Origin: Bigelowiella natans CCMP2755
Taxonomy: Eukaryota; Protista; Cercozoa
Reading direction: 5' to 3'
Assembly: GCA_000320545.1 (NCBI GenBank)
Contig: ADNK01001014.1
Coordinates: 1 to 64,000, forward strand
DNA: 64,000 nucleotides
Program-made: the position numbers and the translations under genes
The notes under the pieces: generated by a model
Database searches by the model: none
Seen by the model: only the letters and a program-made list of their open reading frames with translations
What the model was told of the DNA's origin: nothing
Shown: in pieces, positions 45,420 to 52,500 of the stretch
Numbering within the stretch: position 1 is the stretch's first letter
Layout of the letters: each line of letters opens with the position of its first letter

Positions 45420-47189
45420 TGGCAATGATGATGATGACAGTGTAGGTGCAATTTGGTACGATGTGCAGACAAATGCATTAGATCTGGGCGGCATGAGTAT
45501 CTTTTACATCAACACTGCGCTACTACTGGCAAACTTGTGCAGAAACTTCAAAGTCTTCGCATTATGTGGCTTCTAATGATCAAAAACTTGAGATGCATGA
45601 TGAAGCGACCTCAAGTAGATCATCTTTGAGATGGATTGCACAAAGCTAGAAAGCTTAGACATGAATGAACAAGATCAAAGATGAGCATTTGCACTTGCCG
45701 ATATGGCGGGTCGTGGCTGCGCTTTCTGGACAGAGAATTCATTCATACGCTTGAAACTGCATGTCACCTCCTGGGCACCTTGCATCAGGCTAGCTCAGAG
45801 CTAGCTAGGCAAACGAGTCATGGACGCGCTCTTATCACGTCACTGACAAGCCTTTTCGCAAAGCACCGAAAGAAATTGCAACAGACGCATGCTGAGTTAG
45901 CGTTCTCGCCTCCCCGGACAGGGAGCCCGAAGACTTGGACTGGTGTGCGGATGCCATGTGCACAGCTAGACAGGGATGGCAACTAGGGCTGTGCACTTCT
46001 GTGAATTGAATTGAGGCAGTCTAGCAGTGCGCACGTGACAGTGACGACCAGACTCAACATGCGCAATGCAGCGTTGTTGCGCAGGGCATCAAGAGCCCTC
46101 GCGACAGCTTTCATTGGAGGTGCGACTGCACACGTTTGCGAAGTGCAACCTTTTTCCCGACCGAAGTGGTTCTCGCGCACGCCCAGATCGTTAGCAGGTG
46201 CATTCATGCGCCTCCGACTGCAACCATCAGGCTTCTCCAAAACATTGTGAGCCCACTGACTACGTCACGATTTTCCGAGGAGCATTTCCCACGCAAATTG
46301 AAAGTGCACTCTGTTCCAAAGTGTTCATGATGGGAGAATGCTCACTCGAATCAGTCTGCAGTGGATGTGAGAATGAGAATGTGGGAGGACAATGAGCAAG
46401 TAGAAGAAGAAGAAGTTGAGCAGTGACAGTGAATGAAGTGTCAGTGCTTGTCACGCTTGTGATTGAACTTTCAAAGTGTGATTCCAACGGTGCAACAGAA
46501 AGGATCATGGGACACACACGCACACTGATCCGTGCCCTCCGTGTGGCGACAATGAGAACAATGAGAACAATGATGAAAAACTGCGTTTCCAAAGTGTGAC
46601 AAGACACTTGCAATGTGCGAAGTGCAGTGCCTCGAACTGTTTTCAGTGAGGACTGGCTAGCAACCTAGCGGGGTTCATGCAAATTGGCACAAACCAAACA
46701 TTGAATGCATCACAACTAGCAGCCAAATGACGACGACGCAAAGCATCCATCCTGAGCAGGAACTTCCTGACAGCCACGTCCACACGGAGATCAACGTTGG
46801 GGACAACCGAGGGGGCGCCGAGCAAGACTCTGGTCTTGACAGAGTCAGGAGCATCAAAAAATGAAGAGCAAGCAGCAGATGCGACATCTGGACAAAAAAT
46901 GACAGAAAAAAATGTTCTAAAAAAAGAAAATGTCGGCATTCTAAGTGTTGGGAGAGCCGGTTCAATAGACAGACCGTGAGCGTTGCAACTCGAGCATCAA
47001 GAGGAGACATTCAGAGCAAGAGCAAGCTTGGAGGCGGTGCTGCTGTTTTTAGTTCTTTCAATGTTCAATGTTCAATGTAAGCGCATGTGTAGGGAGTGCC
47101 TGCATCAATGCGAAGTTCAATGAGTTCAACATGTTGAAGTAAATGTAACTCCAATGTAGTTTTTCATCATTGTTTCATTGTTTCCATCC

Positions 47190-48820
47190 ATGGTTATCCC
47201 CCCAGAAACAATGGTGTCGAATGAGAATCGGAAGTTGTTAGACAAGATCTTCAACAAATACGACACTAATGGAGATGGGGTTCTTAGCCTCGATGAACTC
47301 GAGGAGATGGTTGACAACCTCCCCGGAAACTGGACCAGTGTCATGAAAAAGGTAGGTCGAAAAAACCCAATCTAGGACACAAAATCAAATGCTTATGAAC
47401 CACCCTGAATGCTGGCACTGAAGTGTTCTTAAGTTTAACTTTCTCGATTAATACGCCCCTCAGGACTTAATCTCAATCGTCGATTCGGACGCCGACGGAG
47501 AGATCACTCCTGCCGAGTTTGAGAGCGCGTTCGCACTTATTTGCGCCGAGAAGAAATCTGATGGGCAATCCTCTCCACTTAAGAAAGCAGAGGGGGGAAT
47601 TCCAGTAGAGCATTCTAAGACGATAATGCGGAAGATTCTGAGACCAGAGAATTGCAATTCCAGTGGTATCGTTGAGATCGGCGAAGTGCTTAAGTGGATA
47701 GATCTAGCATCGCTGGCGACCAGCTGGAAGCATGCAGGTTCTCAAGGGATTTTTTAATAGTTGTCTTCTTCCTTCTCTCTTCTCAAAAAAAAAATAAAAA
47801 ATCTGAACAAAAGTATTTAACATCAACTTCTTATTTATCTGATGTATGCTCGCACAAGCATGCGCGCATGTCTGATATGTTGTATGTTTATTCTTTCATT
47901 CACGTGTGCTTGTTCGTGCGTGCGCGCTTGTGTATTAATCGATCGAAGGAGGCAATTCCGTCACGAGCCGTATCGACCAGATCCATTTCTCCCCAGAGCT
48001 CCCAAGATTGGGAGACATCGTCATTCTTAACACCAAACTCATAAGAGTGTACGGCTACAAAATGGAGATCGTTGTCAAGGTTAGTTACAACTCCAAGCAG
48101 TCGAAAGAGCAAAAACCACTGTGCACCGCATATAGTGTGTTCGTTGCTCTGGACTTTGATGTTCCGAATATATCCAACAACCCCCCGGTCTTCAAGCCCA
48201 CTCCCCGTAGCATTCCTCCACTGAAACTCTCTACCGACGAGGAAAGGAAGATGTACAAGCTTTCCGTCCTTCATCAGGCACAAAGAAGAGAAAAATATTT
48301 ACTGATGAAGAAGAGCAAGAAGACTGAGGGAAAACATGCAGCAGAAGGGTCCAAATGGAAGACCACGACGACGGAGATCGTACTGCCGCAATACGCGAAT
48401 CCTTACCAAACGTGCTTCGGCGGCCAGCAAATGGCCTGGCTTGTTGACGCTTGTGTTGTCTGCGCGGGCAATCTGATGTCTGAAGGTAGCATTGAGGATT
48501 TGCGTGTGAGTTGCATTGAGGAAGTATTTTTCAAAGCCCCAGTCTTCCTCGGACAGATGGTCGAGATTTTGGCGCAACCCACGAGAATGTGCGGTGAAGA
48601 CTCAGTTGAGATCGAAGTTACTCTCTTCTCTACATGCCGTTTTACCAAAAAAAGAACTCGGTGCAGCCAAACATTCGTCACCCTTAAATCGAAAAGGGGT
48701 CTTCAGTACAAGCCAGCCACTGAGGGAGAGAAAGCGAGGGAAGAAGAATCGCAGAATCGATGGAAACTTCGGCTCAAGCAACGAGTGGAAGACCTGGCGC
48801 AGTCTCTTAACAGCATGTAA
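47190..48820 (+). CDS. EF-hand pair fused to a double-hotdog cytosolic-type acyl-CoA thioesterase (ACOT7/11/12-like)
   Basis: Exons 47190-47351, 47464-47737 and 47949-48820 are phase-consistent (0, then 1). EF loops DTNGDGVLSLDE and DSDADGEITPAE. Hotdog 1: RPENCNSSG...LKWIDLA...VTSRIDQIHF...LGDIV. Hotdog 2: VLPQYANPYQTCFGGQQMAW...IEEVFFKAPVFLGQMV. Confidence 0.85.
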
Positions 48821-49510
48821 GAAATTGAGGGATGAATGTATCGTATCGTATCTAGCTTACTCGTGGTTTCATCATTTAGAGTGCTGCTATGTGCGTGCAC
48901 AAGGGATCTGCTAGTTTTACGTGTGGCGACCAGTGCTCGCACATGTCAAAATAGCAATGTTGACGAGCGACGTTTTGCATGTCATCGTCGATCACTCGCA
49001 AATGCATCATGATCATAAATGCCCTGCGATGCGAGTGAAACTTGGGAGGACTAGCTAGTAACATGTAGCCATGTTTTGGCATGTCTGCGTGCCAGACTTG
49101 CTGCGCATGTGCATGCGCATTACATCATCATTACGAACACACAAAAACAGAGTCGATCAGAGATCGCATGGCGTTTGCCACGTGTGCATTCCACCGCTGT
49201 GACATTTCACATGATCTCGCTTGCTGCACTTGTTACATACAACTACTGCGGCAAGCAGGGGATGACCTAGCTTGCACGCCGACACATCGTTCGTCGTCGC
49301 CGATCGATGCAACGTTGACAAATCCGGCCCGAGCTTGTGTAGTGATTTGCGCGTGCGGCGCGTACATAGCTAGCTAGATAGGCGCTCTCAGTGCCACCAA
49401 GAATAGCATAAAAACATGCAGCAGTCCCTTTCCACCGGATCATTTTGTAGCGATGATGTATGGTATAATTGCTTTGGTAGACATATTTTGACGAAGAGGA
49501 TTGTTCCCCA

Positions 49511-52500
49511 TTAATCATTCAATTGACATAATATTGCCGCACCTTTAAGAACCCAATATCTGGATTTCCGGGTCGAGGGTAAATCGATTGCTAAGACAAA
49601 ATTGGTGGACTGGCCAGTCGTTGACAACGTGCCTGAAAAGAGAAGATGTTTAAAAATATACTCCGAGGACTTTCAAAAATATCAAATCACATACATCAAT
49701 CACACACGCTAACACACACATTTTTTTTACCGGCTCGCACACTTGTCTTGTAGCAAGGGGCTTCGTAATCCGAGGGATTGCGTTTATAGTTCTCCTTTGG
49801 AATGAAATGGATGAGCGGCAGCGTATCGTACAGCTCTCCAAGCTTCGAATCCTCGACACACTTGGCCTCGGGATCCCAACGAGCGCCATCAAAAAATAGC
49901 CCGTACACGTACACGCCGTCTTCCGGCGCTTCTTTAATATCATCCTTGTTGTACTGAGGCAGTACTTTAAACGAGAAGTTGAGCGAGTCGATAGGCACCA
50001 TATACTTTCGGGCGAAGTTTTGCAGCGTTCCCGTGAGGAAGCCTTGCGGATAGAAGAACCCAGGTACCCAGTAGGACGATGGGGGGCCCTTCGTCAACCA
50101 CCCGCGCAGAAATTCGATGCGCAAGTAAAGGTCTTCGTTCCAAGAGCTTAGCGGTTTGAGCGACGGGTAGGCAATATCTTCCCATAGCTTTGGCACCTGG
50201 TTGTTCAGGATGGAGGTAAACATGCGATCGAGCTCCGCCGACATAACAACCTCCCCGCGGATAGCCTTCTGCACCTCCTCAAGAGTGAACCGGACCCGCT
50301 TTAGAAGCCTGTTGAATCGGTCCATTTCCTGGAGCAGCACGGTTGTCAGCGAGTCAAGAACGCCCTTCTTCTTCTTGAAGATTATTGGATGAGCGCTCTT
50401 GCGATTTAGTAGCTTAGGAACTTTATCCTCCATCATCTTGGCAGCTTCAGCGACTACCTCGTCGCTAGTCTTGCCACCATCACCTCCGCCACCAACATTA
50501 GGTTGTATCGAGAGTACTGTCGCTAAGATACGATCTGTTTCTCTTCTCTGGAAGGACAAGTTGGCGTTCTCGTGCATGCCAAATATCTCGGGATCGGCTT
50601 GCAGTGGGAGATTCTGCAAGTAATCTATGGTCTCTTGGTAAGTGCCTTCTGTCGGAGAATAATACAGCCCACTATCTGAGAATTTGTAACCGTCCTTGAG
50701 GATATCCGGAGTGTAGAATTTACTCAGGATGTTCATGAGGCAGCGACGGTCCCAATCGTCGGTCACACGCCCTCCATAGTTAATTTGTCCAGCTACATAC
50801 CTATCAATGGTTAGAATAGTGTTGGGGGTTGTTTTAAGATTACAAACAAACAAAAAACAAGCTAAATTGCATGAAAACTTAAGTTTCTTTCTAGTTGCAC
50901 CGCCCATCCTCCCCTGATTTCATCTCTTCCTCCTATTACGTGAGGGCATCAAAAGGAATTTTCTTCTGCTCCTCGAGGAACATCTGCAAGACTTGCATCG
51001 ATGTTTCCAGGTCCGAGTCGTTGAAACCATACATGATGTTCCAGCCAAGCGGACCGAATTTGCACCTCTCTTGCACTGTTGCATGGAAGAAACACAGTCC
51101 GAACAGCATTTTCTTCCACTCACGTTTCTTGGTGCAGTTCTCGTACTTCTCTGGGTTCACAACGTTGGCAAAGGATCGCAGCAAGTTTGCCCGGAGGCCT
51201 TTGGGGGGTTCGTTCGTCAGTTTGATGCCTTTTTGAAGAACAGGGACTGGGAAGTAGTCGCACGGCATGGATGTGAGCCACAACCGGAAATTGTCGTGAA
51301 TTGAGTCCTCTTCCTCGCTGAGCGAGTGGATGACCTTCTCAAGCCCCGGCATCCAAGACTTGGCAAGATGGCAGTTTTGGAGGCACACCCAGGTTCCTTT
51401 CTTCCTAGCTTCTTTGATCAGTCGTTCAGCAATTGGCCCTTGTCCTTGTCCTAGGGAGCGCATCTCAAGCTTGTTAGAGAACTTCATATCCTTCGCAAAC
51501 CGGAGCAGCATACCCGTAGGGTCCGCCCCGCTGGAAAGGACAAAGATTACTGGTGTAGTTTTGTCAGTGTCCTTGTACACGTCTGCAAGCTTGATGTTCT
51601 GCACCTCCACATACTCCTTGCCCATTTCCTTCACTACGAAGTCGGAGAACGCGAAGACTAGCTTCTCTGTCGAAACGACCTTGAGTAGCAGCAGCTGCTG
51701 GAAGTTACTGAGCTTTGTGCCCCACTCGCCTGGTAATTTTTCCTGATGCGTGTTGCCAGAAGATATGTATGCCGTCCAACTCTTGCTGTCCTCGCCCATG
51801 TCACCGATGATTCCTTTGAATTCAGGAATTGTAGCCTCGATGCCCTGCAGCAGTGCAAAGTTCTTCTCAGTTATCAAATCTGGGAACGGATTTTTGACTT
51901 CTTCTTCTTCTTCTCCATCCTCAGCCTTAGCCTGTGAATCAACAGAAAGTCGATGGAAATAAGGAAAGGCTCAATTGAGTTTATTTGACCAAGTGGCAAA
52001 TTGAAGAACGTACCTTTGGCGGTACGCCTCGAAGTAAGATATTCCATTCGTCAAAGGCAATCTTGCGAGCGTTTCTCATTATGCTGCAGCAGATGAGAAA
52101 CGAGTACATTAGCTTATGGACCTCAAACAAACCACGGCAGATGTTGTTGTAGACGAACATCGTCAAGTAGCTGAGGTATAACATAAAATAAAGCAAGAAG
52201 ACCCATCAGACATATGATAAGAACGGTACAAAAAAAAAGACCAGAATAATGAATTCTCCCTGTACATACTTTGCACTGTCTACCGTTTTTGCTCGTGCAA
52301 TTTGTGTAGTGGTATTTACCTTAGCAGGTTCTCCACGCGCTGCTGGACCTTCTTACTCTTCGGAGCGTTGTCGAGACATTTCATAAACAAGTTGGAAAAG
52401 TAATCTAGAGAATATTGGTACATCGGATCGACATTGCCCATATCCGAAATGACAAAGTACAGCAGGGAGCCACGCGTCGCCACTGGACGATAAACCTCCC

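Follow-up and report, generated by a model that had tools for sequence, protein, structure and literature searches.

The locus described here raises the question of whether a single gene in the nuclear DNA of the chlorarachniophyte Bigelowiella natans joins a calcium-binding module to an acyl-CoA thioesterase and, if so, whether Ca2+ might act on the hydrolysis of fatty-acyl-CoA, as a preliminary description of the window (the whole stretch of 64,000 nucleotides that was analyzed) had proposed. Our data give a direct answer to the first part, as a single mRNA encodes an N-terminal EF-hand pair and then two hotdog domains. Judged by sequence comparison, the predicted protein joins a calmodulin-like module to an ACOT12-like acyl-CoA thioesterase. 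With respect to the second part, the domain layout suggests Ca2+ control of fatty-acyl-CoA hydrolysis. The best explanation overall, which we regard as on balance somewhat probable, is that of a single gene for an EF-hand pair and a thioesterase core, in which the EF-hand pair would be a Ca2+-responsive regulatory module.

Exon-by-exon translation followed by a search showed that the conceptual splice of three exons is identical to a database protein of 428 residues (P0001), and clustering at 90% identity groups the encoded protein with the JGI model Bigna1 87457 (EukProt EP00466), referred to here as P0003. P0001 is encoded on a cDNA-derived JGI contig of 1,587 bases (L002), which matches the genome at 100% identity in the blocks 46964-47036, 47172-47352, 47462-47738, and 47947-48969. 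Since the coding-region introns are missing from this contig, it must derive from spliced RNA, and the junctions 47351/47464 and 47737/47949, which the preliminary description had put forward from the DNA letters, are therefore real. The features of the gene are collected in Table 1.

Table 1. Features of the thioesterase gene, in window coordinates, with the evidence for each
Feature	Position	Strand	Evidence
Upstream 5' exon, either an untranslated leader or, by the JGI model, coding sequence	46964..47036	+	L002 bases 1-73 at 100%, joined directly to 47206
5' intron, GT..AG, contains ATG 47190	47037..47205	+	Removed in one L002 form, kept in the second piece
First coding exon from the likeliest start, holds EF-hand 1 (loop DTNGDGVLSLDE)	47211..47351	+	P0001 residues 1-47 match 100%
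Coding intron 1, GT..AG	47352..47463	+	Absent from L002
Exon with EF-hand 2 (loop DSDADGEITPAE), low-confidence linker, and first half of hotdog 1 with Asp127 (WID)	47464..47737	+	Translation, L002, model, alignment
Coding intron 2, GT..AG, phase 1	47738..47948	+	Absent from L002
Last coding exon: rest of hotdog 1, inter-domain helix, hotdog 2 (Asn289, FGG295-297, Val304), long C-terminal helix	47949..48820	+	P0001 match, model, alignment
TAA stop	48818-48820	+	End of the last coding exon
3' untranslated region, at least to 48969	48821..48969	+	L002 match 100%

The two 12-residue EF loops, one in each of the first two coding exons, both fit PROSITE pattern PS00018, in that positions 1, 3, 5, and 12 hold the ligand residues and position 6 is Gly. 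Pfam scores on P0001 lie above the cut-offs as well, both for EF-hand_1 (44.8 bits, cut-off 25.4) and for the EF-hand_7 pair (PF13499; 33.9 bits, cut-off 30), the latter indicating two EF hands paired in one lobe, and the earlier reading of both loops as canonical is thereby borne out. When the first 95 residues were searched, residues 11-72 matched the calmodulin N-lobe (E values of 1e-12 to 1e-10), and in the AlphaFold2 model, helices 4-17/27-35 and 43-56/63-78 flank the EF loops. By these matches, residues 1-80 are one calmodulin-lobe-like EF-hand pair with two canonical predicted Ca2+ loops, and a short flexible linker comes next. A scan with NCBIfam returned sub-threshold matches only, to XopAW (via EF-hand similarity) and to YciA, and a protein atlas search returned nothing of use.

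Beyond the linker, the chain holds two tandem 4HBT-type hotdogs, which places it in the ACOT7/11/12 tandem-hotdog class; a START domain was absent from P0001, P0002 (an environmental orthologue, see below), and P0003 in Pfam searches, and the protein thus falls outside a strict ACOT11/ACOT12 subfamily. Pfam detects 4HBT at 33.9 bits, in two stretches, residues 85-428 align with human ACOT12 at an E value of 6e-21 as a single sequence, and a three-sequence family profile aligns with ACOT12 end to end over both hotdogs (E value of 1e-36). In the ESM Atlas, an ACOT11 cluster matches residues 94-428. The AlphaFold2 monomer model, for which 85 relatives served as input, reached a mean pLDDT of 90.4 and a pTM of 0.88, with pLDDT values below 50 only at linker residues 82-86, and Foldseek with this predicted model returned ACOT12 first (TMt 0.81-0.90) and then ACOT7. 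By domain identity, residues 95-428 are a predicted acyl-CoA thioesterase of the ACOT12/ACOT7 tandem hotdog type. ACOT12 (3B7K) forms a trimer of double hotdogs (PMC2698920), and the B. natans protein would probably assemble in the same way as these relatives. No targeting leader is recognizable in the ~428-residue protein.

To see how far this architecture extends, we compared a profile exhaustively with 1.84 billion cluster representatives; of the 4,229 matches, the best 150 were examined. P0002 and P0001 were the only two to exceed 700 bits, the match ranked after them reaching 171 bits. P0002, recovered by a word-index search, is a full-length environmental orthologue of 485 residues with 44% identity, in which both loops are canonical. 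Its gene is intronless: a contig of 12 kb in an NCBI assembly carries it as a single uninterrupted open reading frame (ORF), and three further environmental contigs hold a near-identical copy. The genes on the P0002 contig look intronless and tightly packed, unlike B. natans genes. A Skp1-like gene (L001 547-1134) adjoins P0002, and its best named match is from the chlorarachniophyte Amorphochlora amoebiformis (68% identity), a weak hint as to the organism from which P0002 may come.

Other relatives carry EF hands in several states. A partial protein, P0018, has an N-terminal EF pair ahead of a hotdog 1 of this clade, with both 12-residue loops canonical. P0005 and P0115 retain the aligned N-terminal domain and have lost the Ca2+ ligands in both loops; the P0005 locus (L003 3001-4494) is GC-rich (65%). 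In P0029 and P0092 (L011 1726-3039), which like P0018 and P0115 are among the best 150 of the 4,229 matches, the EF pair stands at the C terminus; P0154 and P0155 also belong to this C-terminal-EF double-hotdog group, whose members come from protist or environmental data. A tree computed from the hotdog columns alone puts the four proteins of the N-terminal EF type on one side of a branch with an SH-aLRT support of 93; the two of the C-terminal type make up a pair of their own elsewhere on it, with strong support (99). This separate position of the C-terminal EF clade indicates two independent EF-hand fusions to ACOT-type double hotdogs.

The existence of relatives with N-terminal EF pairs and of an independent C-terminal-EF clade means that the EF-hand-led architecture is not unique, but by the sequences compared here it is rare. 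The preliminary description had treated an EF-hand-led version as something unusual, and this holds, as EF hands are appended in 5 of the 85 relatives and START in 24. A scan of JGI metagenomes returned 3 distant loci, none with EF loops. Searching the B. natans genome with P0001 did not detect a second double-hotdog paralogue, and elsewhere in that genome there were only three small 4HBT matches.

What, then, might the EF-hand pair do? By analogy with ACOT11/12, it may fill the regulatory role that START plays in those enzymes, and Ca2+ binding, to judge from the anatomy of the protein, may alter activity, assembly, or location. Canonical Ca2+ ligands are kept in three lineages otherwise only 28% to 45% identical to B. 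natans, and Ca2+ gating is plausible for this reason. Alternatively, the pair may be a constitutive structural or docking module that caps the core, aids oligomerization, or tethers the enzyme to a partner or membrane, with hydrolysis being independent of Ca2+. Many EF-hand pairs are structural, and the persistence of the aligned N-terminal domain in P0005 and P0115 despite degenerate loops implies that this domain can be maintained without Ca2+ binding, which weakens the case for gating. Furthermore, the high pTM for the whole chain implies a confidently placed N-terminal domain and suggests that the EF pair is docked on the hotdog core, a predicted arrangement compatible both with a switch and with a structural role. 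Against a purely structural module stand the loops, which are fully canonical in both B. natans and P0002, and canonical also in P0018; that they remain so at an overall identity of 44% argues for selection on the Ca2+ ligands. We rate a constitutive structural role as rather unlikely and continue to favor a Ca2+-responsive regulatory module.

The state of the active sites bears on whether there is an enzymatic activity to regulate. In mouse ACOT7, the residues used in catalysis, Asp213 and Asn24, lie in different hotdog domains (PMC2698920). The B. natans protein holds a composite site of this kind, site 1, to which hotdog 1 contributes Asp127, the WID Asp, and hotdog 2 contributes Asn289 together with Phe295-Gly296-Gly297. 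At the equivalent columns in an alignment of 85 relatives, Asp127 is conserved in 84 of 85 and Asn289 in 83 of 83, and the Phe-Gly-Gly motif is invariant among the aligned sequences. Site 1, with Asp127 facing Asn289 and Gly296/Gly297, is thus complete here and is the predicted live site. Site 2 is degenerate here, as in most relatives, and by the same alignment is variable across the whole clade: Asn112 of hotdog 1 occupies a column with Asp in 39 and Asn in 23 of the 85, Ile119 of hotdog 1 stands where Gly or Ala is usual, and the acid position of hotdog 2 is Val304, in a column with Glu in 45, Val in 9, and Asp in 8 of the 85.

These counts agree with the earlier proposal that only one of the two composite sites may function, since site 1 is kept and site 2 is degenerate, and they refine its details. 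The Asn of hotdog 2 and the WID Asp of hotdog 1 are indeed kept, but the Asn of hotdog 1, which had been listed with them, varies even among the closest relatives. Likewise, the WLVD motif noted in hotdog 2 is present, but not as an insertion; Val304 is a substitution at a position that is Glu or Asp in most relatives. Only one of the two sites of ACOT7 is functional, and one live site is the norm for this enzyme class and no peculiarity of the B. natans gene. By family resemblance, the enzyme would hydrolyze acyl-CoA to free acid and CoA at the Asp127/Asn289 site.

A different scenario would have the tandem hotdog act as an acyl-CoA- or lipid-binding sensor rather than as a hydrolase, and the EF pair would couple this sensor to Ca2+ signaling. 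The clade of N-terminal EF proteins has long branches on the hotdog tree and shows clade-specific changes in hotdog 1 where residues are otherwise conserved, namely, Ser176 to Lys and Ser146 to Arg, and the low Pfam 4HBT score of P0001 would also fit a core that has departed from catalysis. However, the set of Asp127 with Asn289 and Phe-Gly-Gly is intact, its members being invariant or nearly so in the relatives examined, and a sensor that has given up hydrolysis appears improbable to us. The preferred reading remains that of a thioesterase under Ca2+ influence. The state of residue 176 (window ~48057-48059) also counts against that reading: it is Ser in 79 of the 85 relatives and Lys in the B. 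natans protein, and the four N-terminal EF proteins carry Lys, Lys, Arg, and Asp there.

Lastly, the idea that the fusion is an artefact of the gene model or assembly, with the EF-hand protein and the thioesterase being separate products, can be rejected as highly improbable. The L002 scaffold does consist of two pieces with N between them, and its 5' end has two forms, but this gap precedes the coding region, and the 47172-48969 piece is continuous over both coding junctions. In addition, one exon carries both EF-hand 2 and the beginning of hotdog 1, and the layout recurs in P0002, where four environmental contigs, independent of one another, show it as a single ORF. The preliminary description had pointed to that shared exon, 47464-47737, which is also seen in the exon translation, and had concluded that the fusion is not an artefact of splicing; with one spliced transcript at hand and the layout uninterrupted in an orthologue, this conclusion stands.

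The two forms of the 5' end also bear on where translation begins. In the L002 scaffold (bases 1-160 compared with window 46964-47234), the forms are separated by N. The first piece has the exon ending at 47036 spliced straight to 47206, defining the 5' intron, while the second piece starts at 47172, inside that intron, which suggests that transcripts may either retain the intron or start at a second site. The earliest base with transcript support is 46964, whereas the JGI model has the upstream exon start at 46946; the frame through this exon is open but without an ATG. The first ATG common to both transcript forms is at 47211, and because homologues start only 15 to 30 residues ahead of the first EF helix, it is the most likely translation start. 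It is also preferred over the ATG at 47190, from which the gene had previously been read and which falls within the 5' intron that is spliced out in one form, so that the earlier choice of start is not upheld. Translation might instead begin at 47190, where the 5' intron is retained, or at an ATG farther upstream, as the JGI model P0003 (499 residues) has it. P0003 adds 71 N-terminal residues from two upstream exons (window 46727-47036), and we did not adopt this extension, a counterpart of which is absent from every homologue.

In the neighboring DNA, a minus-strand ORF of 403 amino acids (49696-50907) resembles, by eye, the C-terminal part of a dynein heavy chain, and this dynein-like gene converges on the 3' end of the thioesterase gene. 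The region between the converging genes, 48840-49400, is rich in short CTAG, CATG, and TGCA palindromes, such as those in the gctagctagat stretch close to 49370.

Regulation of hotdog acyl-CoA thioesterases is known via START domains, nucleotides, and oligomerization. EF hands are among the most promiscuous of eukaryotic domains, and an EF-hand fusion alone is for this reason only moderately surprising. In the literature searched, no EF-hand acyl-CoA thioesterase or hydrolase and no Ca2+-sensing member of the hotdog family has been described, and EF-hand content is absent from a paper on a diatom hotdog thioesterase (PMC6231261). The B. natans protein is already in public databases as an uncharacterized model with precomputed EF-hand and 4HBT domains, and its architecture has thus been visible but unstudied.

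If the proposed role is correct, Ca2+ signaling would be linked directly to the pools of acyl-CoA and free fatty acids, and in an alga with a secondary plastid this input would give those pools a new point of control. A broader and more tentative hypothesis is possible in our view but short of probable. In this scenario, ACOT-type thioesterases would have gained Ca2+ control at least twice in protists, by an N-terminal EF pair here and by a C-terminal one elsewhere, in place of the START regulation of animals, and a rise in cytosolic Ca2+ would directly switch acyl-CoA hydrolysis in B. natans. The two independent fusions offer a natural comparison, and as the protein is small and soluble-looking and its model is confident, the idea is cheap to test.

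Among known systems, human ACOT12, a cytosolic acetyl-CoA hydrolase (PDB 3B7K, 4MOB, and 4MOC), is similar in that its tandem hotdogs align end to end with those of the B. natans protein, although at an identity of only 21% to 23%, and in that the live site has the same order, with the Asp in hotdog 1 and the Asn and Phe-Gly-Gly in hotdog 2, while the second site is degenerate. What is appended differs, however: a START domain at the C terminus of ACOT12, which has no EF hands, and an EF pair at the N terminus of the B. natans protein, which lacks START. Mouse and human ACOT7 (BACH; PDB 4ZV3, 6VFY, 2Q2B, 2V1O, and 2QQ2) share the double hotdog and the Asp and Asn drawn from different domains, but there the two catalytic residues come from the domains in the opposite order, hotdog 1 here aligning best with the ACOT7 C-domain and hotdog 2 with its N-domain, and ACOT7 is without an added regulatory domain.

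Another parallel is the ACOT11 (BFIT/THEM1) type, a double hotdog with START, wherein a thioesterase core likewise bears one appended regulatory domain; there it is a START, and in the B. natans protein it is an EF-hand pair at the opposite end. LPCAT1 and LPCAT2 are acyl-CoA-dependent acyltransferases that also carry EF-hand motifs, although with an unrelated catalytic fold and reaction, and the likeness is one of analogy only. The uncharacterized protist double hotdogs P0029, P0092, P0154, and P0155, in turn, combine an EF pair with an ACOT11/12-like core just as the B. natans protein does, but with the EF pair at the C terminus, where START sits in ACOT11/12.
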